DNA of 63,222 nt, counting the filler, from Octopus bimaculoides (Eukaryota), in assembly GCF_001194135.2 (NCBI RefSeq). It is 3 parts of 3 records of this genome, joined end to end, with 100 filler letters (N's around TTAATTAATTAA, not from the genome) between each part and the next. Parts side by side here need not be neighbours in the genome. Positions count along the whole stretch, not along the records: positions 30,851 to 52,669 come from NC_068997.1; 2 more parts are not named here. One strand, given 5' to 3'. A program made the translations under genes and the position numbers. Each line of letters begins with the position of its first letter. The first letter of the stretch is position 1. The notes beneath the pieces are model-generated. The model did not search any database, was not told the DNA's origin, and saw only the letters and a list, made by a program, of their open reading frames with translations. Positions 30,371 to 53,107 of the stretch are shown in pieces.

Positions 30371-32080
30371 AAGAGTGGCACTCCGTTGCTTACGACATCA
30401 AGGGTTCCAGTTGATTCGATCAATGGAACAGCCTGCTCGTCAAATTAACGTGCAAGTGGCTGAGCACTCCACAGACACGTGTACCCTTAACGTAGTTCTC
30501 GGGGATATTCAGCGTGACACAGTGTGACAAGGCTGACCCTTTGAATTACAGGCACAACAGAAATAGGAAGTAAGAGTGAGATAAAGTTGTGGTGAAAGAG
30601 TACAGCAGGGTTCGCCGCCATCCCCTGCCGGAGCCTCGTGGAGCTTTAGGTGTTTTGGCTCAATAAACACAATGCCCGGTTTGGGAATCGAAACCGCGAT
30701 CCTATGACCGCGAATCCGCTGCCCTAACCACTGTGCCTCCACTTATCTATNNNNNNNNNNNNNNNNNNNNNNNNNNNNNNNNNNNNNNNNNNNNTTAATT
30801 AATTAANNNNNNNNNNNNNNNNNNNNNNNNNNNNNNNNNNNNNNNNNNNNTATATATATATACCATTTGATACACAAACATACGTGTGTGTGTGTGTGTC
30901 TGTGTAGCTGTGTGTGTCTGTGTGTGTCTGTGTGTGTGTGTGTGTGTCTGTGTGTGTGTGTGTCTGTGTGTGCGTGCGTGCGTGGGTGTGCGTGTTACTG
31001 TGTACCTCTTCCTTTTCTTCGTCGTCGTCGTCGCCGTCGACCCCTTTGTCTTCGTTTTTTTCTCTTCCTTTTGCTTAGCTTTCCTCCTCCCCCTCCTCCT
31101 CCTCCTCCTTTCGGTTTCCCTCACCAATTCTCCTACTGTCAAATAAGTCAACAATAACATTAACCAAGTGTAGGTGTTCGACTATAAAAACCTCAACACA
31201 TCACTGCAGTCCCAATCAAAACACCATCAACAGACGCAAACCATGGACTTCTCTGATCTGTAAGTAACCAAGTTTCCTTACACTTTTATAAATACACACA
31301 CACATATACACACACACACATACACATACATACATACATACATACATACATACATACATACATACATACATACATACATTCTTGTTTTTGGCACTCCGTC
31401 GCTTACGACGTCGAGGGTTCCAGTTGATCCGATCAACAGAACAGCCTGCTCGTAAAATTAACGTGCAAGTGGCTGAGCACTCCACAGACACGTGTACCCT
31501 TAACGTAGTTCTCGGGGATATTCAGCGTGACACAGAGTGTGACAAGGCTAGCCCTTTAAATTACAGGTACAACAGAAACAGGAAATAAGAGTGAGAGAAA
31601 GTTTTGGTGAAAGAGTACAGCAGGGTTCGCCACCATCCTCTGCCGGAGCCTCGGTGAGCTTTAGGTGTTTTCGTTCAATAAACATTCACAACGCCCGGTC
31701 TGGGAATCGAAACCGCGATCCTATGACCGCGAGTCCGCTGCCCTAACCACTGGGCCATTGCACCTCCACATACATACATACATACAAGTGTGTGAATCTT
31801 AGCGAAGGATATGCTGAATAAAATCATAATTAACTGATCCGCCCTCATTTTCTCTTACTGAAAGCCAAGAACTTTTCAGCCAAGAACGTACATACATACA
31901 TACAAACATGTAATACTTCACCCCTGGAATCATGGGTGTTTTGTTCATCATCCTTAAACAACCCTTATTCAGGGACCTTTTGAGCGGGAAGGGCTACTCG
32001 TCGTAAAGTTTGGGCCTCGTAAATTTATACCCCAGCGTCACTTTGATGGCGTGTGAGAGATGCCCTCTCACTATGAAAGA

Positions 32081-32145
32081 TGCTCTCTCGCTATGAAAGA
32101 TGCTCTCTCGCTATGAAAGATGCTCTCTTGCTATGTATGTGTATA
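32081..32145. repeat. 20-bp minisatellite, 3 copies
   Basis: ctatgaaagatgctctctcg repeated. Confidence 0.85.
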
Positions 32146-32508
32146 TAGGCGGATGGCCAAGTGGTTAGAGTGTTGCTCTTACGATCGCGAGATCGTGGTT
32201 TCAATTCCTGGACCGGGTGATGCATTGTGTTCTTGAGCAAAACGTTTCATCAAACATTGCTCGGCCATCCCTTCGAAACCTGACGTATGGTACACGTCAG
32301 GTGTCGAAGGGATCACAAAACAATGTGTTGCCAGGACAACGTTGATTTGGTGGCGCAGTGAGTTAATGTACAGCACGTGCCTTTGATCACTATAAAGAAT
32401 CCTTTTGTGCAGGCTGCTCAGCCAGAAATTGCAGAACCGTCTTGTTTTGACCGTGAGAGACAACCGTGAGAGACAACCATATGTATGTTGTCAACCGTGA
32501 GAGACAAC

Positions 32509-32547
<39 letters not shown>

Positions 32548-33486
32548 NNNNNNNNNNNNNNNNNNNNNNNNNNNNNNNNNNNNNNNNNNNNNNNNNNNNN
32601 NNNNNNNNNNNNNNNNNNNNNNNNNNNNNNNNNNNNNNNNNNNNNNNNNNNNNNNNNNNNNNNNNNNNNNNNNNNNNNNNNNNNNNNNNNNNNNNNNNNN
32701 NNNNNNNNNNNNNNNNNNNNNNNNNNNNNNNNNNNNNNNNNNNNNNNNNNNNNNNNNNNNNNNNNNNNNNNNNNNNNNNNNNNNNNNNNNNNNNNNNNNN
32801 NNNNNNNNNNNNNNNNNNNNNNNNNNNNNNNNNNNNNNNNNNNNNNNNNNNNNNNNNNNNNNNNNNNNNNNNNNNNNNNNNNNNNNNNNNNNNNNNNNNN
32901 NNNNNNNNNNNNNNNNNNNNNNNNNNNNNNNNNNNNNNNNNNNNNNNNNNNNNNNNNNNNNNNNNNNNNNNNNNNNNNNNNNNNNNNNNNNNNNNNNNNN
33001 NNNNNNNNNNNNNNNNNNNNNNNNNNNNNNNNNNNNNNNNNNNNNNNNNNNNNNNNNNNNNNNNNNNNNNNNNNNNNNNNNNNNNNNNNNNNNNNNNNNN
33101 NNNNNNNNNNNNNNNNNNNNNNNNNNNNNNNNNNNNNNNNNNNNNNNNNNNNNNNNNNNNNNNNNNNNNNNNNNNNNNNNNNNNNNNNNNNNNNNNNNNN
33201 NNNNNNNNNNNNNNNNNNNNNNNNNNNNNNNNNNNNNNNNNNNNNNNNNNNNNNNNNNNNNNNNNNNNNNNNNNNNNNNNNNNNNNNNNNNNNNNNNNNN
33301 NNNNNNNNNNNNNNNNNNNNNNNNNNNNNNNNNNNNNNNNNNNNNNNNNNNNNNNNNNNNNNNNNNNNNNNNNNNNNNNNNNNNNNNNNNNNNNNNNNNN
33401 NNNNNNNNNNNNNNNNNNNNNNNNNNNNNNNNNNNNNNNNNNNNNNNNNNNNNNNNNNNNNNNNNNNNNNNNNNNNNNNNNNNNNN

Positions 33487-34278
33487 TTTAAGGAGAAAAT
33501 GCTCCAAAAACTTGCAAAAACATTTGTGAAGTTTATGGTGATGAGGCTGTAGGTGAATCAACTGTTAGAAGGTGGTTTGCAAAACTTAGAGCTGGAGAGT
33601 TTAGCTTAGAAGATGACAGTTGCAGTGGAAGACCTTCAAAATTGGATGAGGACGTTTTGAAGGTAAAAACTGAAGAAAACTCAAATATCACGACTAGAAA
33701 ACTTGCAGAAGAGCTGGAAGTTTCTAAATGTACAGCTCCTGAACACCTAATAAAGCTAGAATACATTTCTCGCTATAATGTATGGGTCCCTCACAAACTC
33801 TCAGAAAAGAATTGCTTGGACCGGTATTCCGTTTGTGATGTGCTTTTGAAACGGAATGAAAACATACCTTTTTTGAAACAACTTGTAACTGGAGATGAAA
33901 AATGAATTGCGTATGAAAACGTAGTACGGAAAAGATCATGGAGTTTGCGTAAGGATGACCCAAAACAGCAACCAAAGACGAATATCCATGCCAAAAAGCT
34001 ATGCTTTGTGTTTGGTGGGGTCATAAAGGCTTTCCCTACAAAACCAGACCATTAATTCTGATGTTTACTTTCGTCAGCTGGCTTACTTGAACAAAAAAAA
34101 AAAAATCAAAGAATTGAGGCTGGAGATTGCCAACAGGAAAGTGGTAGTGTTCCAACAAGACAATGCCCGACCACATGTGTCTTTGACTACCCGAACAAAG
34201 TTACGTAAACTTGGTTGGGATCTCTTACTCCATCCACCATATTCTCTTGATATTGTGCCATCAGACTACAACTTGTGA
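33487..34278 (+). mobile_element. Mariner transposase pseudogene
   Basis: HTH region, SGRP, WVPHKL, VTGDEK, QDNARPH and HPPYSLDIVPSDY motifs, with stops, frameshifts and deletions. Confidence 0.92.
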
Positions 34279-35052
34279 CACAAGGGCTCATTGGTATTTA
34301 TTTCATTGACTCCCGAATGGATGAAAGACAATATCAACCCTTCAGCTGAAGTTGAACTCAGAACGTAAAGACAGACGAAATGCCGCTAAGCATTTTGACC
34401 AGCGTGCCAAAATAGCACAGTCTGCTAGCACAAGCTTATAAAAAAATCCCCTTTTCTTCTTCTTCTTCTTCTTCTTCTTCTTCTTCTTCTTCTTCTTCTT
34501 CTTCTTCTTCTTCATCTTCTTCTTCTCCTCCTCCTCCTCCTTCTTCTTCTTCTACTATCCGTCATAGGTCAACGTTGTTCTTTCTAATTTTGTTTCAAAG
34601 CCAGCAATTTTGAGGAGGGAGGTCGATTACATGAATTCCAATGCTCAGCCGGTATTTATTTTAATTTCAAGCTGTCTTTTAAATTGAAACTGTCTTGTAC
34701 AGTATGCTGGGCTTGTATATGACATGGCCACTTGCTTGGACTCGAAAAAATCTTGTGACCGTCGATATAGAGTTTTGTTTTTGTTGAGTTTTGTTTTTTT
34801 GTCTAAAAGTTCTATATCCAAACAACCGCTGTTCTACTTATTGGTGCTCACATCCTATGTCTTTCCATTTCAAGATTATTACACTCCGACAATTATTTCC
34901 TGGTAGTGTCTAGTGGGGCTTGGCTAATATTTTACACAGTAAATGTTATTAACAACTTTTCAGGGTGGTAGCGAATAACAATGTAAACGGTTTTTTAAAA
35001 ATAATTTCTGAACAGAAGACCTCCCTGCGTACTGACAATTCATATTTTTGTG

Positions 35053-35060
35053 TATAAATA
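35053..35060 (+). promoter_or_regulatory. Candidate TATA box of paralog A
   Basis: TATAAATA ending 36 nt upstream of the ATG. The region is AT-rich, so a chance match is possible. Confidence 0.35.
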
Positions 35061-35095
35061 AACTGTATAGCGACGTCGATTATTTTAAATAACCA

Positions 35096-36574
35096 ATGAA
35101 CATTTTAGAAGATTTTAATAGTGTCAACTTTTCGTTTCCTTTCAGTTCTGATTTTATCGAACCATTTAAAATACATATTGTAGAAAATATACAGATCAAT
35201 ACTCGTAACGACAGATTAACTGCTCTCGAGAAAACTGGTTACAACGTCTTTAAAATACATCCCGAAGATGTTATTATTGATTTCCTCACAGACGCTGGTA
35301 CTAATGGTTTGAGTCTTAAGCAAAATTCAAGATTATGGATGGGCGATGAAAGCTATGCTGGATCAAGTAGTTTCGAAATTTTGAAGGACAACACCACCTA
35401 CATTTCTGGTTTTGAAAACATATTACCTGTTTTTTCTAAACGTACTAGCGAAGAGATTGTCGCTTCTTATCTCGCAAAAGCTGGAGACAAAGTCATTGGA
35501 AATACGTTTACTTACACGCTTGAAAATCATCTGAAGCATATTAAGGCGGAACCGATTTCTATGGTGGATTGGTCAGATGAGAATTTCGGAGGAAATTTAG
35601 ATACTAAAGCATTCAGAAATTTCCTGAAACAAAATGATAAAGAAGAAATTTCTTTCGTTATCATGAATGTACCATCAAAGAATCTTGGTGGCCAGCCGGT
35701 TAGTATGTCCAACATGAAAGAAGTTTCCGATCTTTGTCGAGAACATTCGATTCCCATCTATATCGAAAGCAGTATGTATGGTGAGAATTGCTGGCGCACA
35801 AAGATGCACGAAGAAAACTATTTTAATAAATCATTGGTTGAAATATCTCTGGAAATGTTCTCGTATTTCGATGGCTGCATCCTTTCTGCTAAAAGAGACG
35901 GCAGAAGTGAGATAGGGAGCGTCATTTGTCTTCGAGACGAAGAAATGATTCGAGAACTGGGCAGTGTTATAACCTTTAAAGCAGGTTTCATCACTTATGG
36001 TGGAATGGCTGGCCGAGACATGGAAATAGTAGCAGAAGGCATGCGCAGTGCATTGGATGAACAGCTCCAAGATTATAGAGAAAAACAATTAGCATATTTC
36101 AAAAAATCCTTGAAGGAATTTGGAGTCCCAATTGTAGAACCTATTGGTTGCAACACCATCTTCATTGACGCCGAAAAAGCTTTCCCACAACTTAGTCGAA
36201 AGTTTTATCCCGCTTGGTCTTTAGCTTGTGCTGCTTATATAATCGGGGGTATTCGATGCGCAGAGTTTGGTCAAATTACACATGCAACCCAAAGCTTACC
36301 CGATGATCATCCACTAAAAGGCCGAGAATTGATCAAACTTGAGGTACCTCGTTTTATATATACGACATGTCATTTCATTTATGTCGCCTACGTTTTCTCG
36401 CAGCTGATTTCTCATAAAATGATTTCTGGAATGGAAATTGTCGATTCCCCTGAATGTAAAGTAAAACATATTAAAACATCGATGGTACCACTCAGCTCGA
36501 TGGACTATGGAGATATCCATCTTCTACCAGTGCTGCAAAATTGTGATCACCTCCACTTCTTTAAACACATTTAA
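35096..36574 (+). CDS. Tryptophanase/tyrosine phenol-lyase family (beta-eliminating lyase, fold-type I PLP) paralog A; uninterrupted ORF, lacks the Schiff-base Lys
   Basis: Intact 492-aa ORF colinear with TnaA/TPL: EPFKI, DFLTDAGT, MGDESYAGS, GGQPVSM, EMFSYFDG, GFITYGGMAGRDME, GGIRCAEFG, PRFIYT. The SxKKD motif reads SAKRD (R267, AGA at 35894-35896). In-frame TAA at 35090-35092 lies just upstream of the ATG. Confidence 0.93.
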   Translation: MNILEDFNSVNFSFPFSSDFIEPFKIHIVENIQINTRNDRLTALEKTGYNVFKIHPEDVIIDFLTDAGTNGLSLKQNSRLWMGDESYAGSSSFEILKDNTTYISGFENILPVFSKRTSEEIVASYLAKAGDKVIGNTFTYTLENHLKHIKAEPISMVDWSDENFGGNLDTKAFRNFLKQNDKEEISFVIMNVPSKNLGGQPVSMSNMKEVSDLCREHSIPIYIESSMYGENCWRTKMHEENYFNKSLVEISLEMFSYFDGCILSAKRDGRSEIGSVICLRDEEMIRELGSVITFKAGFITYGGMAGRDMEIVAEGMRSALDEQLQDYREKQLAYFKKSLKEFGVPIVEPIGCNTIFIDAEKAFPQLSRKFYPAWSLACAAYIIGGIRCAEFGQITHATQSLPDDHPLKGRELIKLEVPRFIYTTCHFIYVAYVFSQLISHKMISGMEIVDSPECKVKHIKTSMVPLSSMDYGDIHLLPVLQNCDHLHFFKHI

Positions 36575-36578
36575 TAAA
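36573..36578 (+). terminator. Candidate polyadenylation signal overlapping the stop codon of paralog A
   Basis: AATAAA overlaps the TAA stop at 36572-36574. Confidence 0.3.
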
Positions 36579-36938
36579 CCAGTTTTAACCACTCAACACC
36601 TGCTTAGAAATACCAACCTTTCATTTGAATTACACTCCTCTTAAAATAGATGAGATACATCTGATAATGTCGTCTTGAATGCCCTAAAGAGAACAGATAA
36701 CATGCAGTTAGTCCCAGATCAATTAAGGATAATCTAGGATTAAACAATATATGTAACAACAACATCAATAACACAGACTCAAGAGATTTTTATTTTGCGC
36801 TCAAATTCATCTGAAAATATATTTTATAATTCATATATTTTTATAATTTGGCGAAATATTCTGTTAATTTTTGTTCGTATTTCTTTTCAATGCTTCTACT
36901 CCAGTTCCCCATATCTATCTATCTATATATATATATAT

Positions 36939-37074
36939 ATCAAAATAAGCAACAAGGATATCCAAAGTTAACGCAGTACGATCATTTCATACGACTCCAC
37001 ATATTTAGATAAGTGGAGTCGCATGAAACGATCGTATTGCATTAACTTTGGATTTCCTTGTTGCTTATTTTGAT
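36939..37074. repeat. 62-bp-arm palindrome (12-nt loop) downstream of paralog A
   Basis: Arms at 36939-37000 and 37013-37074, with 5 mismatches by manual comparison. Confidence 0.85.
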
Positions 37075-37989
37075 TTTAATCACCATATTTTGAAATTTTA
37101 TGGATAATACGGTACTTAATTCTGGTTCCTAAACTTAAGTACCATATTCACCTTGAATCTAAATTTTATATAACTACCTATTGATTGAGCTCTATCTCCC
37201 TCTAACAAAAGTATTTGGCCATTAAATTCTTAAATATGATTGCATTCACAAAATCTCTTCAACTAAAACATTGTGCTATGTATATTATCATAACAAACAA
37301 GGAAATAAAATGTATTTGGAAACTCGAAGATATTTTTCTCGTGATTTTTACTATTGTTTTATCAACTCTTTAAGAAAAAGAATAATAATTCTACGGAAAT
37401 AATTTCTAATTTTGGAAGACATTGTGATGCAATATTGCTATTTATCATTTATTATGCTAATGCTATTTAGCCTTTCAAAAATAATGAAATGCCTTTGTCA
37501 CATTAAAAATGAGACGACAAAATACTATAAAGTGAAAACGCGTGGCTGCCCTATTCGAAAATAGAACCCATGTGATATATGGTCAAAATACCACCGCGGT
37601 GAATATGATGACGAAGTAAATCTATATAGATTTTTATATAGATAAGGATATGACCATTATTTAACGATCAAATCAAGTGGCAGCATGAGAAGAAAAAACC
37701 TCATAGGTTATAATTATTATTAAAATTATTGAAATTTTCCTTTATTGTATGATATTGCACCTAGCTGTTTATATTAATTTGTGTGTGTGTGTGTGTATGC
37801 GCGTGTAGAAGGTTGATAGGTATGACCGTTCAGAGAGTGACCATTGGTTTCGCACCTATAAAGCGCTTAGCTCTATAAGCGACTCGTCAGACTCAAATGG
37901 CCGGAGGTATATAACCTCTCTACAACTGCAGAGAGAAAAAACATCACCTATAAACTACTTATGCATTATTATCTTATTTGTATCTCTTC

Positions 37990-38023
<34 letters not shown>

Positions 38024-39542
38024 NNNNNNNNNNNNNNNNNNNNNNNNNNNNNNNNNNNNNNNNNNNNNNNNNNNNNNNNNNNNNNNNNNNNNNNNNNNNN
38101 NNNNNNNNNNNNNNNNNNNNNNNNNNNNNNNNNNNNNNNNNNNNNNNNNNNNNNNNNNNNNNNNNNNNNNNNNNNNNNNNNNNNNNNNNNNNNNNNNNNN
38201 NNNNNNNNNNNNNNNNNNNNNNNNNNNNNNNNNNNNNNNNNNNNNNNNNNNNNNNNNNNNNNNNNNNNNNNNNNNNNNNNNNNNNNNNNNNNNNNNNNNN
38301 NNNNNNNNNNNNNNNNNNNNNNNNNNNNNNNNNNNNNNNNNNNNNNNNNNNNNNNNNNNNNNNNNNNNNNNNNNNNNNNNNNNNNNNNNNNNNNNNNNNN
38401 NNNNNNNNNNNNNNNNNNNNNNNNNNNNNNNNNNNNNNNNNNNNNNNNNNNNNNNNNNNNNNNNNNNNNNNNNNNNNNNNNNNNNNNNNNNNNNNNNNNN
38501 NNNNNNNNNNNNNNNNNNNNNNNNNNNNNNNNNNNNNNNNNNNNNNNNNNNNNNNNNNNNNNNNNNNNNNNNNNNNNNNNNNNNNNNNNNNNNNNNNNNN
38601 NNNNNNNNNNNNNNNNNNNNNNNNNNNNNNNNNNNNNNNNNNNNNNNNNNNNNNNNNNNNNNNNNNNNNNNNNNNNNNNNNNNNNNNNNNNNNNNNNNNN
38701 NNNNNNNNNNNNNNNNNNNNNNNNNNNNNNNNNNNNNNNNNNNNNNNNNNNNNNNNNNNNNNNNNNNNNNNNNNNNNNNNNNNNNNNNNNNNNNNNNNNN
38801 NNNNNNNNNNNNNNNNNNNNNNNNNNNNNNNNNNNNNNNNNNNNNNNNNNNNNNNNNNNNNNNNNNNNNNNNNNNNNNNNNNNNNNNNNNNNNNNNNNNN
38901 NNNNNNNNNNNNNNNNNNNNNNNNNNNNNNNNNNNNNNNNNNNNNNNNNNNNNNNNNNNNNNNNNNNNNNNNNNNNNNNNNNNNNNNTTTTTTCTTTTTT
39001 TTTTTTTTTCGCGTCATTCGGAAGACTTTGGTGAAAAATATTGGAAAAACTTCCAGTCAAAACGGAGAAATTCCGGCTTACGTGGGCCGTCTGATCCGAA
39101 ACTCACTTTCCCAACTAATGAAATCATAGAGTTACTGCGTTTTATTGTCATTGATATTGAGGTGGTTTGCCATTTCCTTCCTCAAATGGATGGCCGTCGG
39201 CTCTTCCGTTCTACGACAGGTTTTATTTTCGTCCTATTGGCTGTCCAGACACCCTCCTGACAAGAGTCGCAAGCGACTCAAACAAGGGTTTTTGGTTTAC
39301 TCGCCGACCAGTAGCCAGCAATTAAACCGGCTCCCTGCTCTTAAGTAACCTGCTTCCCATTCAAGTGGTCGGTGATGACCAACGAGCACACACTCAGATA
39401 CACACACACACACATACACATAGCAGGCGCACTAACGTATACGCATATATGCACACACGCAATCGCAAGTACACACACACACTTTTTTTAATCTCCTCCT
39501 TCACTTCGCTTGTAAATAACTACGTCTCTACACCCCTACATG

Positions 39543-39900
39543 TAAGAGGTCATGTCGAAAGGTTCCTGGCTTTGGGTAAAAGAAAATGCAGGAAGATCAG
39601 TTAATTATGGCTTCATTCAACATATTCTCTTCTCAGTGGTCCTTGAGTTTTTGTTAAACCCTGTAAAAGAACTCGGAAGTTTAGGCTTCCAACCAAGCCT
39701 ATTGCGATACACTTAAAACCAGAAACTAACATACCCACTAACATACTCAACACACATGCACACACACATATGAGGTGGTGCTGCAAAGTTCCTGGATTCG
39801 GGTAAAAGAAAATAACAGGAGGATCACTTAATTATGATTTTATTCAACATATTCCCCTTTCAGGTTTTCACACTTATTGATGCGGCCCTTTGCAGCGTTA
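39543..39900 (-). mobile_element. Two tandem mariner 3'-end/TIR remnants
   Basis: Direct repeat aa(a/g)gttcctgg..tt.gggtaaaagaaaat..caggargatca.ttaattatg at about 39559 and 39786. The minus strand encodes KCENLKGEYVE-stop (mariner C-terminus) followed by a TIR-like end, TATGAGGTGGTGCTGCAAAGTTCC. Confidence 0.65.
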
Positions 39901-40095
39901 CAACAAACACGCGAATTGGTTGTCATTTGTGAATCGTTATGGAAACCACGCCACAATGACGCTTCAATCAGCGCCAAAACGCCCAATGCAAGAATAAGAA
40001 CGTGGGAGTGTGTGTGTGGGGGGGGTTCGTATGTGTGTGCGAACACACACAGACGAGCGCAGGCACAGACATACACACACACACAAGTACACACA

Positions 40096-40170
<75 letters not shown>

Positions 40171-40203
40171 ACACATGACAAGCTTGTACCCAGTTTTTTA
40201 AAA

Positions 40204-40231
40204 CTTAATTTCCATTTTTTCTCTTTGCCAG
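40204..40231 (+). promoter_or_regulatory. Candidate 3' splice acceptor just upstream of paralog B
   Basis: CTTAAT branch-like motif, pyrimidine tract (ttccattttttctctttgc) and CAG ending 10 nt before the ATG. Confidence 0.55.
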
Positions 40232-40241
40232 TCTCCAAGCT

Positions 40242-41612
40242 ATGGAACCTTACAAAATCAAGGTTTTTTATCCCACCAAGCTAATCTCAAGAGAAGACCG
40301 CATAAATTGTCTGACGGAAGCTCATTACAATCCATTCCTTTTGAAATCAGATGATATATTCATTGATCTGCTAACAGATTCCGGCACTGGAAGCCAAAGC
40401 GCAGCTCAGTGGTCCGCCATGATAAATGCTGGCCATTCAACCATTAATTCGGAATACGTCACACAGTTTATACGTACCATTCAACATGTTACCAAATTCA
40501 AACATGTATTTCCTGTTCACCAAGGTAGAGGAGCAGAAGACTTGGTAGCAAAACTGTTACTGAATAAAAACAGCGTTGTCCTGAGCAATTCATTGTTTGA
40601 TACGACACGTGCACACGTCGAATCGTCTGGTGCAATGGGGATAGACTTAGCAGCCACCTCTTCTAAGTTTATGGGAGATGTCAATGTGGAAAAATTCAAG
40701 GAATCGCTAGATAAATATGGATCATGGATTCATCTTGTAATAATTACCTGCACCAATAATGTCGTAGCTGGAGCTCCAGTAAGTATGCAAAATATAGAAG
40801 TAATAACGAAGTTATGTAGAACAAATAATATCCCGGTTTTCATGGATGCGTGTCGTTTCGTTGAAAATGCTTATTTTATCAAGACTTTAGACGAGAAATA
40901 TTCAAAGCACACCATCATAGATATTGCACATGAAATGTTTTCCCATTTTGATGGTGCATCTATGTCTCTTAAAAAGGATGGTATAAGCAACGGAGGGGGA
41001 TTTTTGGCTTTGAACAACGATAAATGGGCAAAAGAAATATTTGATATCGTTGAATACAAAAGTGGTTATTCAACATTTGGTGGAATAACTGGGGCAAATC
41101 TTGCTGCATGCACTGTAGGAATTTCTGAAGCCATGAACGAAAATTACCTTCGGTCAAGAATCCATCAAGCAAAGTTGTTGGCTGGTTTCTTGGAAGACAA
41201 TAACGTTCCAGTCTTTAAACCGGTCGGGGCACACGCAGTTTATGTGAAGGCAAATGAAGCGTTGCCACATCTAGAATTCGCTAAATATCCTGCATGGTCT
41301 CTTAATTGTGCCGTATATATTGAAGGTGGAATTCGATGCGGAGAAATCGGTAATGTAATGTTTGGTGAATCTCCAGATGGATCGAAACACACTCACCCTT
41401 TTGAATACGTTCGACTGGCTTTACCCAGAAGAACCTATACTGTCAATCATCTACATTTTGTAGCAAAAGTATTTGGCAATGTCACCAAAAAGGCCCAGCT
41501 CGTCCACGGAATGGAAATTGTCAAATCTTCGCATCTCTTGAGACATTTCACGATTTGGATGAAACCTATAAACGATATTCTAATAGGAAACGATATCAAT
41601 GATAAAAACTGA
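40242..41612 (+). CDS. Tryptophanase-like paralog B; uninterrupted ORF, PLP site intact but lacks the catalytic Tyr (TPL Tyr71 / TnaA Tyr74)
   Basis: Intact 456-aa ORF with YNPFLL, DLLTDSGT, HQGRGAE, LFDTTR, TNN, MDACRFVENAYFI, SLKKD (K245), GGIRCGEIG, VRLALPRRTYT, LRHFT. The GDEAY motif is replaced by AGHST (T67, ACC at 40440-40442). Confidence 0.95.
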   Translation: MEPYKIKVFYPTKLISREDRINCLTEAHYNPFLLKSDDIFIDLLTDSGTGSQSAAQWSAMINAGHSTINSEYVTQFIRTIQHVTKFKHVFPVHQGRGAEDLVAKLLLNKNSVVLSNSLFDTTRAHVESSGAMGIDLAATSSKFMGDVNVEKFKESLDKYGSWIHLVIITCTNNVVAGAPVSMQNIEVITKLCRTNNIPVFMDACRFVENAYFIKTLDEKYSKHTIIDIAHEMFSHFDGASMSLKKDGISNGGGFLALNNDKWAKEIFDIVEYKSGYSTFGGITGANLAACTVGISEAMNENYLRSRIHQAKLLAGFLEDNNVPVFKPVGAHAVYVKANEALPHLEFAKYPAWSLNCAVYIEGGIRCGEIGNVMFGESPDGSKHTHPFEYVRLALPRRTYTVNHLHFVAKVFGNVTKKAQLVHGMEIVKSSHLLRHFTIWMKPINDILIGNDINDKN

Positions 41613-41844
41613 GCTGTCTTCTCTTTGCAAGAGTCCGCTGCAAGTAATGACAGGTTACATTTGGTAATGCCTTCCTTCCCTGTGTTTTTCATTCGTTCTT
41701 AGCTCTGGACTCATTTCTCTGAAAGGTGCTTTACGAATACTCTAACCGTGTGCTTTGCAAAAAAAAAAAAAAGAAAAAAAAATCAATCAGCAGATAAGAA
41801 GCTAATTTTATACAGTTTATAAGGATTATTACTATCAAGTATAA

Positions 41845-42055
41845 CGCAGCGAGTTGGCAGAATTGTTAGAACGTCGGAAAACAAAACTTAGCAGCATTTC
41901 GCCCGTCTTTACGTTCTGCGTTCGAATTCCATCGAAGTCGACTTTGTTTTTTATCCTTTCGGGGACGATTAAATAAGTACCAGTTGTGCACTGGGTCGAT
42001 GTAAACGACTTAACCCCTCTTCCGAAATTGCTGCTCCTGTACCAATATTTGAAAG
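41845..42055 (+). mobile_element. tRNA-derived SINE with core gtcgacttt...atcctttcgggg...aaataagtaccag (minus-strand copies near 11560-11770, 11920-12130, 12405-12580, 25455-25690, 34270-34420, 45520-45675, 50170-50350, 51780-51970)
   Basis: B-box-like ttcgaattcc and a conserved core repeated many times. Confidence 0.75.
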
Positions 42056-42083
42056 TGTTATATAGGTGTGTGCGTATATATAT

Positions 42084-42345
42084 AATTGCCAACTATGGCG
42101 GTCCCATACAGGACGATGCTACTGTTATTTTTAGCCCCAGGAGGACATCTCCCCCAGCTGTCTAACGACACACTGCCTGTGTCCGGTGTGTATCACGTAA
42201 GGCTAGAGATGGAAACGATGATTTCTCCTCACAAATACTAATCGGACACAGACAATGTGTCGTCAGCCAGCTGCAGGAGATGTCTTCCTGGGGCTAAAAA
42301 CAACAGTAGTATCGTCCCCTATGGGACTGCCATTTAGTTGGCAAT
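42084..42345. mobile_element. Fold-back MITE (arms of about 105 bp) downstream of paralog B
   Basis: aattgccaact...tgtgtccg and cggacaca...agttggcaatt; TA flanks. Confidence 0.8.
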
Positions 42346-45300
42346 TATATTTTACGATTCCGTACTGCTACTGTTTACTTCCCGCTCAGAGATTTAATAT
42401 TAGATTAATGTATGTTGGTGTATTGCTGTGTGTGTGTGTATACGTTTGAGATGGTACCAGTGTTTATACATTTGTTAATGAATAAACAGATAGTTCATCT
42501 CCGCCTTTCTCCCTCTCTAGTTATATTAATGCTACGTTTACCTTTATCTACAAGTGGAGTAGCGTGAGATTGTAAACTCGAAAACCTTATCAATAAAACT
42601 TATATCTAAAATGTTTAACGCAATTTTATATTTTGAAATGAATTAAAACTGAATAAATTTATTCGTTTTCAACTGATGTACGTTGATGTCGCGTTGTTTC
42701 TTCTTTATTTCGTCTCTATTTACTTTTCTGTATCTACGTGTATGTCGTGTGTGTATTTGTGTGTCTCTATGTATATGTACGTTTATTTTTTTCTTTCCGA
42801 TTCACTTTAGTTCTTTTTCGTGGAGTTCGAGCCAGTCACTAATAAAGTGGCATGGGTTGATAGTGACCTGAGACGATATTTTAATTAGCATTCATTATAT
42901 ATATTTCCATAGTTTTCAAATGCAAAGGATGTTTTCCTTTTTCTGCCAGTCTCTCTTTTTTACTCTCTCTCTCTCTGATTTAGCATGGCTTCTACGGCTG
43001 GATGCCCTTCCTAACACCAACCACTCCGAAAGCGTAACACACACATGCATATATATATATATATATATATCAATGTAACCTCGTGGATATCGTTGGCGAT
43101 TTTTTCTTCCTCCGTCTTTCCCTTCTTTGGACTTTTCTTTGCTTCCGACGAAGAGCTCCGCTCGAAACGTCAAATTCACTTTCTTTCCTTTCCCGAGCGT
43201 CCAGTAACACAATCTGTATCAGGTCCTCACGTTGTTGTTTTTTCTTGTCTTTTTCCTTTTTTGAACTATATATATANNNNNNNNNNNNNNNNNNNNNNNN
43301 NNNNNNNNNNNNNNNNNNNNNNNNNNNNNNNNNNNNNNNNNNNNNNNNNNNNNNNNNNNNNNNNNNNNNNNNNNNNNNNNNNNNNNNNNNNNNNNNNNNN
43401 NNNNNNNNNNNNNNNNNNNNNNNNNNNNNNNNNNNNNNNNNNNNNNNNNNNNNNNNNNNNNNNNNNNNNNNNNNNNNNNNNNNNNNNNNNNNNNNNNNNN
43501 NNNNNNNNNNNNNNNNNNNNNNNNNNNNNNNNNNNNNNNNNNNNNNNNNNNNNNNNNNNNNNNNNNNNNNNNNNNNNNNNNNNNNNNNNNNNNNNNNNNN
43601 NNNNNNNNNNNNNNNNNNNNNNNNNNNNNNNNNNNNNNNNNNNNNNNNNNNNNNNNNNNNNNNNNNNNNNNNNNNNNNNNNNNNNNNNNNNNNNNNNNNN
43701 NNNNNNNNNNNNNNNNNNNNNNNNNNNNNNNNNNNNATATATATGCACAAGCACACACATATATACACACAGTAGTGATTTGACATTATACTTTCACACG
43801 TAAGGAAAAATAAAAGTAAAATATTTTAATATACAAACGAAAACATAATATAGATTTATCATTATAAGATAGATAGATAGATATACATATTCATTTATTT
43901 TGTTTTAACGTCCACTTTTCCAAGCCAGCATGAGTTAGACGGAATTCATTGAGACAGATTTTCTACATTTGAATGCATTTCCTGTAGTCAACCCTCGCCT
44001 GTTCCAAAGTAAGGCAATGTTCCCCCTTCCTCACAGAATATTGGGAAACAAGGTAGAACACTTCAATGACAGTTTCCCTCACAACTGTAATACGATGTGA
44101 AGGAAGGAGATACATGCATGATACATACATCATCATCATTGTTTAACGTCCGTTTTCCATGCTGGCATGGGTTGGACGGTTTGACTGGGGACTGGCAAGC
44201 CAGAAGGCTGCACCAGGCTCCATTCTGATCTGGCAATGTTTCTACAGCGGGATGCCCTCCCTAACGCCAACCACTCTGAGAGTATAGTGGGTGCTTTTAT
44301 GTGCCACTGGCACGGGAGCTAGTCAGACGGCACTGGCATTGGCCTCTTTCGGATGGTGCTTTTTATGTACCACCGGCACGGGGAATGTGTGTATGTCATC
44401 AGCATCATTATTTAACGTCTGTTTTCCATACTGACATGAGTTGGACGGTTTGACAAGAGCTGGCAAGCTAGAGGATAAGGTGTTAGATAGATAGATAGAT
44501 AGATAAAGGGAGAGAGAGGAAGAGATTCTATAGACGTCTTTTACTTCTTATCTACCAAATCCACTAACAAGGCTATAATCAGTCCATGGCTATCACAGAC
44601 ATCTGCCCAAGGTGCAACATTGAGTTTGAACCCAACGCCACATGACTGGGACGTGAGCTTCCTATTCACACACCCATGTCACATCTATACATATGTCTTC
44701 ATTTAATTTCTGCTTTCCATTGCTGGCATGGGTTGGACGGCTTGACAGGAGCTTGTAAGCCACTAAAGCCAAGATTTGCCTCAAATCGCACCCTACCATT
44801 TTAAAAGAATTCCTAATAGAAGTGGCACCACCCTACATATTTTGTTTTTTCTTCTAATACACCGGTTTCTATGGTGGCATATGTGTTCCCCACAGCTGGA
44901 CGGGACGACAGTCCATCGCAGTGTTACTCAAGAAATAGAAAGAAAGAATGAGAGAAAGTTGGAGCAAAAGAGTACAACAGGGGTCACCACCACCTGCCAG
45001 AGCCTTGTGAAGCATTAGGTGTTTGCGCTCAATAAACACACACAACGCTCGGTCTGGGAATCGAAACCACGATCCTCTGACCGTGAGTCCGCTGCCCTAA
45101 CCACTGGGCCATTGCGCCTCCACCGCTAATGATTCCACTAGCTCAATAATGATGATGATGATACAGATGAGATTGAGATATCTAGGGCGTGGCAATTAAA
45201 AACCAAAACCATCTCTGTTGCTGTAAGTACCCTGGGAATGATCAAAAAAGGGTACTGGTACATTTTTTGACCAGATCCCTGGGAAACAAACAATTTATGA

Positions 45301-51095: not shown

Positions 51096-51589
51096 AAGAG
51101 CGAGACAGACAGAGAGAGAAAGACAGACAGAGAGAGAGAGACAGACAGAGAGAGAGGTGGGGGAAGAGGAGGAGGATATATATGTATGCATATATATATA
51201 TATATATANNNNNNNNNNNNNNNNNNNNNNNNNNNNNNNNNNNNNNNNNNNNNNNNNNNNNNNNNNNNNNNNNNNNNNNNNNNNNNNNNNNNNNNNNNNN
51301 NNNNNNNNCTTTCAGTTTCCGTCTACCAAATCCACTCACAAGGGTTTGGTCAGCCCAATGCTATAGTAGAAGACACTTGCCCAAGGTACCACACAGCCAC
51401 TCCATATATAATATATACATCGGCAATGGTTTTTGATAAGCATCATCAGTGTTTACAATTCTGTAAATAATAATACTAGTATCTTATAAACTTTAAGCTT
51501 ATAAAATACTTCACCCACTGCCCAAGAATTTAAAAAGAAAAGTTCTTGATTTAATTTTTAAAAAAGTAGGAACCACAAGTTTATATTAC

Positions 51590-51742
51590 CCTCTTCTTCA
51601 AAAGTCTTTGGAAAGGCATCATTTTTCACAGTGTCTGGATACAAATATATCAACATCTTCAAATCGTGTATTCTTTTCTCTAAGGATCGAATACTAAGTG
51701 CCTTGTGGTCATATGGCTTCAAGTTCCAAACAGTCATTTTAC
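51590..51742 (-). CDS. Internal coding exon (153 nt, phase 1-1) of the minus-strand host gene
   Basis: tcatccttag acceptor and gtaata donor; open frame GKMTVWNLKPYDHKALSIRSLEKRIHDLKMLIYLYPDTVKNDAFPKTFEEE with ordinary protein-like composition. Confidence 0.7.
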
Positions 51743-51965
51743 CTAAGGATGACAGTAATAGCAATACTTTAAACAAAAACAATAACGGTTTCAAATTTTG
51801 GCACAAGGCCAGCAATTACGGAGGATGGGGTAAGCGAATTACATTAAACCCAGCACTCCACTGGTACTTGTTTCATCAGCTTTGAAAGAATGACAAGTAG
51901 AGCCAACCTCAGTGGAATTTGAACTCAGAACATAAAGATACTAATGGTTCTGCCAGTTTGCTGCC

Positions 51966-52011
<46 letters not shown>

Positions 52012-52199
52012 GTGTGACCATGAGATAGAGAATAGGAAGCCAGACATAGCCTTAATTGAGAAAAAAAACAAACTGTGCTGGATCATAGATATAGGGCTTT
52101 CCTATAAGTAGGTTATCTCCCTTGGTTAGGCGGCGCTCCATGTAGACAATTAAACTTCCGCAGACTATCTACGCTATTGTTATTGTTTTACGTCTTATC

Positions 52200-52376
52200 A
52201 TGGATATAAAGCAATTCGATGATTCAGCTATCGAAATACTTACTGTGCCTGAGTTAAAGAAATATTTAAGATTATATGGACAGTATGTTACTGGAAGAAA
52301 GGCGGACTTGATTGAATGGTTGAAAGGTATAAAAATTCTGTCGATATGGCAACAAAGTAAATTCATCGGACGATAA
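52200..52376 (+). pseudogene. SAP-domain mini-ORF (58 aa), probably a transposon remnant
   Basis: LTVPELKKYLRLYGQYVTGRKADLIEWLK fits the SAP motif; too short for the ORF track; the following sequence is frameshifted. Confidence 0.55.
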
Positions 52377-52569
52377 GTCTGAAGTATCGGACGATACTTC
52401 AGACAGGAATAAGCAGAAGTATTGCCTGATCCCAATCTGCTTTCAGCAACTATTCACTGATTTGGCCATGAGCATGATGAGGTGTAGAAGAGGTAGGGAC
52501 AGTCACACTATAAAGTCTAATAATTAGAGGAATATTAGATTCAATGCTGTAAGTTTATTATTTAATCAA

Positions 52570-52610
<41 letters not shown>

Positions 52611-53107
52611 AAAATGAGAATGTGTGATTGATTTCAAGGCCTTCCCAGATAAGAGACTGGTTATTCTAANNNNNNNNNNNNNNNNNNNNNNNNNNNNNNN
52701 NNNNNNNNNNNNNTTAATTAATTAANNNNNNNNNNNNNNNNNNNNNNNNNNNNNNNNNNNNNNNNNNNNATATATATATATATAGTCAGTAGTTCATATA
52801 TCTGAACAGAAAAGCACACTCTAAAACATAAGAGCAGTAACATATTTTTTTAGTAAGGTAAATGTTATGGTCTACCATAGAGTGACCAATGGTTTCATGC
52901 CTATAAAGTACTTAGAAGTATAAGCAACTTGTCAGACTCCAATGGCTAAAGGCACATATGTTTATATTTATATAAGAATACACACACACTTGCAGACACA
53001 GACAGGCAAACATACATACAAATGTTAACAAATAGAGAAACATATCCACACACAGAGGAATATGTATAGCGCAACATGTACACACACACACACATGCACA
53101 CACGCAC

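Follow-up and report, generated by a model that had tools for sequence, protein, structure and literature searches.

Why should an octopus carry two neighboring genes of a typically bacterial enzyme family, and what might the two be doing together? We addressed this question in a window of 63,222 nucleotides (nt), the whole stretch of DNA under study, of which positions 30851-52669 are Octopus bimaculoides chromosome DNA (CM046617.1 of GCA_001194135.2) and form the piece analyzed here. The piece contains two long open reading frames (ORFs) on the plus strand, A (35096-36574, 492 amino acids) and B (40242-41612, 456 amino acids). Both match Pfam PF01212 Beta_elim_lyase (130.9 bits for A and 176.5 bits for B; cut-off 27) and align end to end with solved structures of tyrosine phenol-lyase (TPL) and tryptophanase (TnaA), with E values of 1e-88 and 1e-97, in agreement with the initial annotation, which had described two coding sequences (CDSs) colinear with TnaA/TPL. 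Their presence in octopus was already known, as both are NCBI-annotated genes: A is 100% identical to model P0121, 'tryptophanase 1 isoform X1', and B is 100% identical to model P0001, 'tryptophanase isoform X2'. The answer towards which we lean, if only a little, is that A and B are the two parts of a split cephalopod tryptophanase, which would have arisen by complementary loss of catalytic residues, would be co-produced in octopods through a shared leader exon, and would have an independent counterpart in bacteria.

In TPL, Tyr71 serves as the general acid, whose partner residue Lys257 both forms the Schiff base and acts as the C-alpha base (PMC10170061). In E. coli TnaA, pyridoxal phosphate (PLP) is bound on Lys270, Tyr74 and Tyr307 bind the PLP phosphate of the neighboring subunit, and the activity of the Y74F variant is negligible (PMC2770544). 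We mapped 18 cis-acting and 8 trans-acting positions, in C. freundii TPL numbering, onto five A and five B sequences and found that the losses are reciprocal. All five A sequences retain D68-E69-S-Y71-A-G, F288, and Y291, with the GDE(A/S)YAG loop intact, and carry G99K, F123T, D124Y/H, N185K, D214E, C216S, R217M, K257R, N262E/L, and R404K. All five B sequences retain every pocket residue (including D214, R217, N185, Q98-G99-R100, and R404) as well as the TnaA-type D124, I/L381, and His-Phe; in each of them the loop is replaced, segment 68-73 being variable within the lineage (GHSTIN, GFSSLN, GVSGPD, and GFSNPE), and positions 288 and 291 vary. Chiton, bivalve, Nematostella, and bacterial sequences retain both the cis and the trans set.

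The octopus proteins follow this pattern. P0121 (A) keeps the trans-acting elements E74, Y76, F287, and Y290 and carries R256, E213, M216, K184, and K403. P0001 (B) keeps K253/K254, D211, R214, N182, R105, R400, D129, I378, and His-Phe, and has AGHSTIN in place of the loop. At the PLP-lysine position, 5/5 A sequences have Arg, and two of them, P0124 and P0125, lack the preceding Lys as well. At the specificity sites (TPL-124, 381, and 448-449), B has D129, I378, and RHF, which are TnaA-type, and A has Y, F, and KHI. These sites are regarded as separating TnaA from TPL specificity, in part on the evidence of PMC10170061. The codons at the general-acid and PLP-lysine positions are the following.

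35354-35356, plus strand: Tyr76 codon TAT of A, counterpart of the general acid in TPL (Tyr71) and in E. coli TnaA (Tyr74)
35894-35896, plus strand: Arg256 codon AGA of A, at the PLP Schiff-base lysine position (TPL K257, TnaA K270)
40440-40442, plus strand: Thr76 codon ACC of B, at the general-acid Tyr position (B-lineage residues T, T, S, G, and N)
40974-40976, plus strand: Lys254 codon AAG of B, the predicted PLP Schiff-base lysine (Lys in 5/5 B sequences)

The pattern extends beyond the known catalytic positions. An unbiased scan covered 152 alignment columns that hardly vary outside the cephalopods; A alone has lost 41 of them, B alone 20, and both have lost 2. Columns changed in the A lineage include 99, 123, 139, 155, 181-185, 214-217, 257, 265, 343-346, and 403-406 (TPL numbering). 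Judged by their residues, neither protein is a standard TnaA, A lacking the defining lysine and B the defining tyrosine, and the label 'tryptophanase' is misleading for A because absence of the PLP lysine would preclude covalent binding of PLP. The tryptophanase subfamily model NCBIfam NF009709 / PRK13238 (cut-off 285 bits) takes in A (409.3 bits), B (486.4 bits), and the chiton homologue (595.8 bits). None of the TnaA/TPL equivalogs TIGR02617, NF053783, and TIGR02618 (cut-offs 825.8, 750, and 720.7 bits, respectively) is reached by A (272, 334, and 336) or by B (336, 392, and 381). By NCBI criteria, neither A nor B can be named TnaA or TPL.

Because the Tyr loop acts in trans, an A:A or a B:B dimer would lack an essential element at every site, and an A:B dimer would have one complete site, made of the B pocket and the A Tyr loop, and a second site dead on both sides. 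Since this loop reaches into the active site of the other subunit and the residue losses are reciprocal, we consider it reasonably probable that A and B form an obligate heteromer with a single composite active site per dimer. After duplication, B would have kept the complete cis pocket (the PLP lysine, the Asp at the PLP nitrogen, the arginines for phosphate and carboxylate, and the TnaA-type substrate residues) and dropped the general-acid Tyr loop; A would have kept this loop and a second trans-acting Tyr and dropped the lysine and most of the pocket. The obligate heterodimer would probably assemble into an A2B2 tetramer, and its most likely reaction would be the conversion of tryptophan into indole, pyruvate, and ammonia.

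The gene structure of the octopus locus is compatible with joint production of the two proteins. A and B would belong to one transcription unit, in which a single promoter and a 17-nt leader are spliced to either body A or body B; this arrangement would place both partners in the same cells. The parts of the unit are the following.

31183-31190, plus strand: TATA-type box TATAAAAA, a putative core promoter by sequence reading, about 53 nt upstream of the leader-exon ATG
31243-31259, plus strand: shared leader coding exon of 17 nt, ATG GAC TTC TCT GAT CT, encoding MDFSD and holding 2 nt of a Leu codon
31260-31265, plus strand: splice donor GTAAGT directly 3' of the leader exon
31260-35145, plus strand: leader-to-A intron of 3886 nt, holding an N gap (32548-33486), a dispersed repeat (31574-31769), and a mariner remnant
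33642-34278, plus strand: degenerate mariner-type transposase remnant within this intron
35146-36574, plus strand: main exon of gene A, with acceptor TTTCGTTTCCTTTCAG ending at 35145, phase 2; predicted non-catalytic partner
36575-40231, plus strand: 3' region of A and remainder of the 8972-nt leader-to-B intron, with an assembly gap (38024-38987) and (CA)n at about 40050-40180
40232-41612, plus strand: main exon of gene B, with acceptor TTTTTTCTCTTTGCCAG ending at 40231, phase 2; predicted catalytic subunit

The sequence MDFSDL occurs once in the piece, at the leader exon, and is contained in neither ORF, and the NCBI models of A and B have a common start base and yield proteins that both begin with MDFSDL. 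Joining the leader to 35146-36574 or to 40232-41612 gives P0121 and P0001 exactly. Both acceptors are of the polypyrimidine-AG type, are in phase 2, and lie 13 nt before the GAA of a conserved EP(F/Y)K motif. Body A sits within the intron of the B transcript, and candidate poly(A) signals follow the A stop at 36739 and 37304. The 'uninterrupted ORFs' reported for this locus are thus correct for the two bodies, which have no introns, but not strictly for the genes, which truly begin in the shared 5' exon, at 31243-31259. ORF A opens with 50 nt of intron sequence (35096-35145), in which its ATG lies; a second Octopus species (L008-L010) has ATT at this start, and its A acceptor is otherwise identical to that of O. 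bimaculoides. Gene calling from raw ORFs gives A a wrong N-terminus and, in the second species, the truncated 410-amino-acid P0123.

Outside the octopods, a box similar to the putative octopus promoter, CTATAAAAC, lies upstream of the leader in the B-type contig L011. In this contig (L011:1-160, SRR27666082), a TATAAAA box and an MNFDEL leader are followed by the body contiguously, without an intron; either the contig represents a spliced transcript whose start lies upstream of the TATA-like motif or this species has lost the intron. Another non-octopod contig (L004:300-360, ERZ21867824) has the intron at the octopus position. The sharing of the leader appears to be octopod-specific, and the proposed pairing of A and B would not require it. 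In the octopus piece, the leader-to-B intron is bracketed by two long microsatellites about 9 kb apart, (TG)n at 30881-31013, just before the leader exon, and (CA)n at 40040-40177, just before the B acceptor. Together they make up an imperfect inverted repeat of about 125 nt, probably as a mere consequence of microsatellite composition.

An exhaustive profile search revealed bacterial proteins of about 900 amino acids with two lyase domains, for which we compared 11 representatives. They are encoded as single ORFs in about 45 bacterial genomes, among them genomes of Prolixibacteraceae, Desulfobacterales, Elusimicrobiota, and Acidobacteria. Their N-terminal half retains DEAYAG and Y291 in 11/11 cases and has a decayed pocket (K257 lost in 6, N185 in 9); their C-terminal half has a full pocket in 11/11 cases and has lost Y291 in all of them and Y71 in 8/11. 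Such a fusion would amount to a covalent, single-site pseudo-heterodimer. Because the fusion halves sit with the TPL clade and not with A or B, their complementary decay appears to have arisen independently. Two modules that are forced to pair have here decayed in a complementary manner, which supports the pairing of A with B by analogy, and we regard this as the strongest indirect support for the heteromer. When columns lost in the cephalopod proteins were compared with those lost in the fusions, the A-only losses were N-half-like by 15:0, as against 3:4 for B (Fisher p 0.005, Mann-Whitney p 0.0006). The fusions form a widespread bacterial family and range from about 880 to 930 amino acids, and NCBIfam scores the whole protein as a tyrosine phenol-lyase. 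Examples are an 882-amino-acid protein of Plebeiibacterium marinum D04, a cultured member of the Prolixibacteraceae (L038:4001-6649), and one from a Desulfobacteria metagenome-assembled genome (L013:3064-5805), with about 45 more loci in L014-L074.

The two octopus proteins might instead act separately, B as a homomeric PLP lyase whose altered chemistry dispenses with the general-acid tyrosine, for example by elimination from substrates with good leaving groups such as cysteine derivatives, and A as a pseudoenzyme without catalysis that binds or regulates something unrelated. The cis residues for the binding of PLP and amino acid are all present in B, TPL Y71F reportedly retains activity on substrates with good leaving groups, and the replaced pocket residues of A are conserved in their new state, hinting at a function of its own for this pocket. 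We nevertheless consider separate action unlikely. It does not explain why A, having lost the pocket, has kept precisely the trans loop (6/6 residues, as well as F288 and Y291, in each of 5/5 sequences), why B has lost exactly the Tyr loop, or why the same complementary pattern recurs in covalent bacterial fusions, and in octopods the two bodies share one putative promoter and leader. Several observations do weigh against the obligate A:B heteromer and its joint production. About half of the replaced pocket residues of A are invariant within the A lineage and several of the replacements are conservative (K257R, D214E, and R404K), which suggests that the altered pocket is constrained rather than drifting and may have residual ligand binding. 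Of the trans elements, only Y74 and Y307 are documented as such in the cited studies, E69 and F288 being presumed, in part from adjacency. Some B-only losses (E14, Q190, I263, and D348) resemble losses of the N half of the fusions and not of the C half, and for one B-type cluster, P0004, the data contain no A-type counterpart. The evidence for leader-to-A splicing in octopus is the NCBI model together with a conserved acceptor of compatible phase, and in non-octopods the A leader reads MDSANA as opposed to MNFDEL for B.

The likeness between the pair and the fusions also raises the question of whether the cephalopod genes derive from a bacterial fusion gene that was transferred and later split. 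The order of A then B on one strand indeed mirrors that of the N and C halves, but groupings of A with N and of B with C had 0% support in 100 bootstraps, and A and B sit with the chiton and bivalve sequences. Octopus A is 31-32% identical to the halves compared with 39% to the chiton protein, and octopus B 36% compared with 47%. Moreover, the C halves are mostly TPL-type (T124 and R381) and B is TnaA-type (D, I/L, and His-Phe), and A and B have their intron position in common. We rejected this origin on the bootstraps and identities, and hold it to be very improbable.

How firmly are the two genes anchored in octopus DNA? Within the leader-to-A intron, the ORF at 34087-34275 matches the catalytic domains of the SETMAR and Mos1 transposases (E 1e-13 to 1e-6 in a PDB sequence search); the ORF at 33642-33905 had weak helix-turn-helix matches only, and a Pfam search of the mariner-like ORFs gave nothing at threshold. 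The dispersed repeat at 31574-31769 recurs downstream of B at 44931-45123, and microsatellites are also present in the piece. About 10 kb downstream of B lies a gene whose product has STAT_bind, STAT_linker, and SH2 domains, included here for context only.

51558-52669, minus strand: 3' end of the STAT gene, from the NCBI gene table of CM046617.1 (start L001:30316, corresponding to about 51558 in the window)

The guanine-plus-cytosine (GC) content of the CDSs is 0.38/0.39 and that of third codon positions (GC3) 0.35, compared with 0.367 for the flanks. Between Octopus and Argonauta, the ratio of nonsynonymous to synonymous substitution rates (dN/dS) is 0.125 for A and 0.077 for B, with dS saturated above 1.4, and the ORFs of both genes are intact in every species sampled. 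The spliceosomal intron, TATA box, intronic transposon, STAT neighbor, host-like GC and GC3, purifying selection, and synteny in Argonauta establish A and B as real host genes under purifying selection. A bacterial tna operon, with a tnaC leader peptide and a tnaB permease beside tnaA, was not found in the piece, which holds no further long ORFs; the neighbors are the mariner remnant and the STAT gene, and the absence of tnaB and tnaC noted earlier is thereby borne out.

Neither CDS is touched by the assembly gap at 38024-38987, which comes after the A stop and before the B acceptor. The chromosome-level assembly has identical gap coordinates and is therefore not an independent test of continuity. 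Contig L008 (Octopus sp.), tried as a bridge, aligns only to 35020-36897 and 37167-37570. Continuity over this gap (38024-38988 in the initial annotation) thus finds no support from L008, whereas the gap-free Argonauta locus keeps the A-then-B order in the same orientation. There, the leader exon (MDFSDL) with a GTGAGT donor is found at L002:455, so that synteny in another species holds for both the leader exon and the gene order. The Argonauta hians locus is an A-B-A-B array with a second pair nearly identical to the first (BAAFZT010000080.1, L002:6906-16263; protein identity 100% between the A copies and 98.7% between the B copies), reflecting a duplication that either is very recent or was introduced by the assembly. 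The NCBI model P0122 of Argonauta (847 amino acids) is a wrong fusion of a truncated B with the following A.

Where did the genes come from? Catalytically intact homologues are present in a chiton (Liolophura), a bivalve (Sinanodonta), Nematostella, and a coral, and a 2021 survey listed tnaA in octopus, anemones, corals, hemichordates, a hermit crab, and others and left its origin open (PMC8537960). The distribution in eukaryotes is patchy, as the initial annotation held, but wider in animals than it assumed, and the acquisition of the gene appears to be neither octopus-specific nor recent. In the Liolophura gene, a 7-kb intron separates a tiny 5' exon from a single large exon; the Sinanodonta CDS has no introns, and that of Nematostella has four internal introns. 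The chiton 5' intron resembles the cephalopod intron in architecture and differs in position by 2 nt. There is no sufficient ground for calling the two introns homologous, the chiton one being in phase 0 and 15 nt before the GAA as opposed to phase 2 and 13 nt.

The identity between A and B is 31%. Non-octopod relatives have both A-type (P0124 and P0125) and B-type (P0002-P0004) sequences, and the cephalopod intron is present, in position and phase, in A-type and B-type genes of a non-octopod genome (L003 and L004). Because both types, with the same intron position, occur in non-octopod relatives, the duplication would predate the split between octopods and non-octopods; an old duplication also fits the 31% identity. 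A and B share 6 exclusive rare residues. Pairs among A, B, chiton, and bivalve share 5-13 rare residues, and the cnidarians share 1-6 with any one of these four. The identical intron position and phase, the 6 exclusive rare residues, and the placement of both proteins among mollusc sequences indicate that A and B are tandem paralogues within a mollusc-type gene. Four single-domain relatives near the mollusc sequences (P0335, P0338, P0339, and P0342) have partly altered Tyr loops or pockets (for example ADESYKNS, or R404K in P0339) and may be further diverging animal paralogues.

For the deeper history we used bootstrapped neighbor-joining trees with Kimura distances, whose deep nodes are unreliable. 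The cnidarians and each of the two lineages A and B had 100% bootstrap support; a mollusc clade reached 55% and an animal clade 28%, both of these figures being subject to a narrow bacterial sample and likely long-branch effects. The animal proteins are 51-58% identical to TnaAs of marine Chloroflexota, Balneolaceae, and Planctomycetota, and identity between animal proteins is no higher. A bacterial, that is horizontal, origin is plausible on these figures, and any such transfer would be ancient since homologues also occur in chiton, bivalve, and cnidarians; the family would have entered, or stayed in, molluscs long before octopuses arose. The neighbor-joining trees are unable to separate one ancient transfer, several transfers, and vertical descent with losses. 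Of the proposal that one acquisition was followed by tandem duplication, the tandem paralogy therefore stands, and a single acquisition may be one history among several, the animal clade having 28% support. The motifs shared by A and B, which had been taken as a sign of one acquisition, do not serve this purpose: YPAWSL also occurs in the closest bacterial homologues and is thus ruled out as a derived character of the paralogues.

Two further rival explanations were weighed. According to one, A and B are bacterial contamination, an assembly artefact, or decaying pseudogenes, a reading that could appeal to a draft assembly with many gaps, a typically bacterial family, and CDS bodies without introns. 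It is extremely improbable in view of the spliced leader exon with canonical signals, the mariner remnant and host repeats within the intron, the STAT neighbor, the host-like GC and GC3, the recurrence of the locus structure in Argonauta and a second Octopus species, and dN/dS values of 0.08-0.13 over dS above 1.4 with ORFs intact in all species sampled. The initial annotation had likewise argued against contamination and for bacterial-type enzyme genes integrated in animal DNA, and the leader exon and its intron, the transposon remnant, repeats, STAT neighbor, GC, and Argonauta synteny agree with it on both counts. According to the other, the gene is an ancient eukaryotic or animal gene inherited vertically and lost in most lineages. 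Homologues in Cnidaria and three mollusc classes speak for vertical descent, as do those reported from hemichordates, a hermit crab, and others (PMC8537960), the single animal clade and the mollusc clade in the neighbor-joining point tree, and some rare residues common to animal groups. However, the animal proteins are as similar to certain marine bacterial TnaAs (51-58%) as to those of other phyla, support for the animal clade is 28%, Nematostella has four internal introns where the mollusc bodies have none, and the distribution across eukaryotes is patchy. On this evidence we consider vertical descent doubtful, although it deserves to be taken seriously.

We found no description of the split enzyme, the shared leader, or the bacterial fusions in the searchable literature, and the cephalopod split enzyme and the fusions appear to be undescribed. 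If our reading is correct, the octopus pair would be a clear animal case in which duplication and complementary degeneration have made two paralogues depend on each other as an obligate hetero-oligomer; only homotetramers have been known from this enzyme family until now. The bacterial fusions would be an independent natural replicate, making this a repeated evolutionary outcome for the TnaA/TPL family. Cephalopods would own a conserved enzyme likely making indole from tryptophan, which is relevant because indole is usually regarded as a purely microbial signal. A single promoter that serves, through splicing, two alternative and complete gene bodies would, in addition, be an unusual route to the co-expression of partners.

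How does the proposed pair compare with known systems? With bacterial TnaA and TPL, A and B share a full-length, colinear fold-type I PLP lyase domain (with B about 45% and A about 40% identical), and B has the full PLP and substrate pocket with Asp at TPL-124, Ile at 381, and His-Phe at 448/449. Each subunit of the bacterial homotetramers holds both pocket and Tyr loop, whereas the octopus paralogues hold one each; their scores are far below the equivalog cut-offs, and their genes have a eukaryotic structure with a shared spliced leader instead of a tnaC/tnaB operon. The bacterial fusions (for example P0327-P0331) resemble the pair in that one module has the Tyr loop without the lysine pocket and the other the pocket without the Tyr elements. 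They differ in being one polypeptide, in being TPL-type rather than TnaA-type, and in standing phylogenetically apart from the cephalopod genes. In the trypanosomatid prozymes (AdoMetDC/prozyme and DHSc/DHSp), an enzyme and its dead paralogue together make an active hetero-oligomer, and at the DHS interface one site works and the other is dead. These enzymes have folds and cofactors unrelated to those of the octopus proteins, and their live subunit is weak alone, whereas each octopus partner is predicted to lack an essential element. Closer still is eukaryotic serine palmitoyltransferase (SPT), also a fold-type I PLP enzyme, in which a bacterial homodimer has become a heterodimer of the paralogues LCB1 and LCB2 (SPTLC1/SPTLC2); LCB1 lacks the PLP lysine, and the heterodimer has been proposed to have a single active site (PMC3794620). 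In SPT, only one paralogue has retained the PLP lysine, its partner contributing residues to the shared site, and the residues of A and B show the same division, A being without the lysine and predicted to serve the site of its partner, B having it. SPT belongs to the alpha-oxoamine synthase subfamily, catalyzes another reaction, is membrane-bound with small subunits, and is encoded by unlinked genes that are universal in eukaryotes, so the octopus pair is not a member of its family. By analogy, we regard SPT as the closest functional counterpart of the proposed octopus enzyme.

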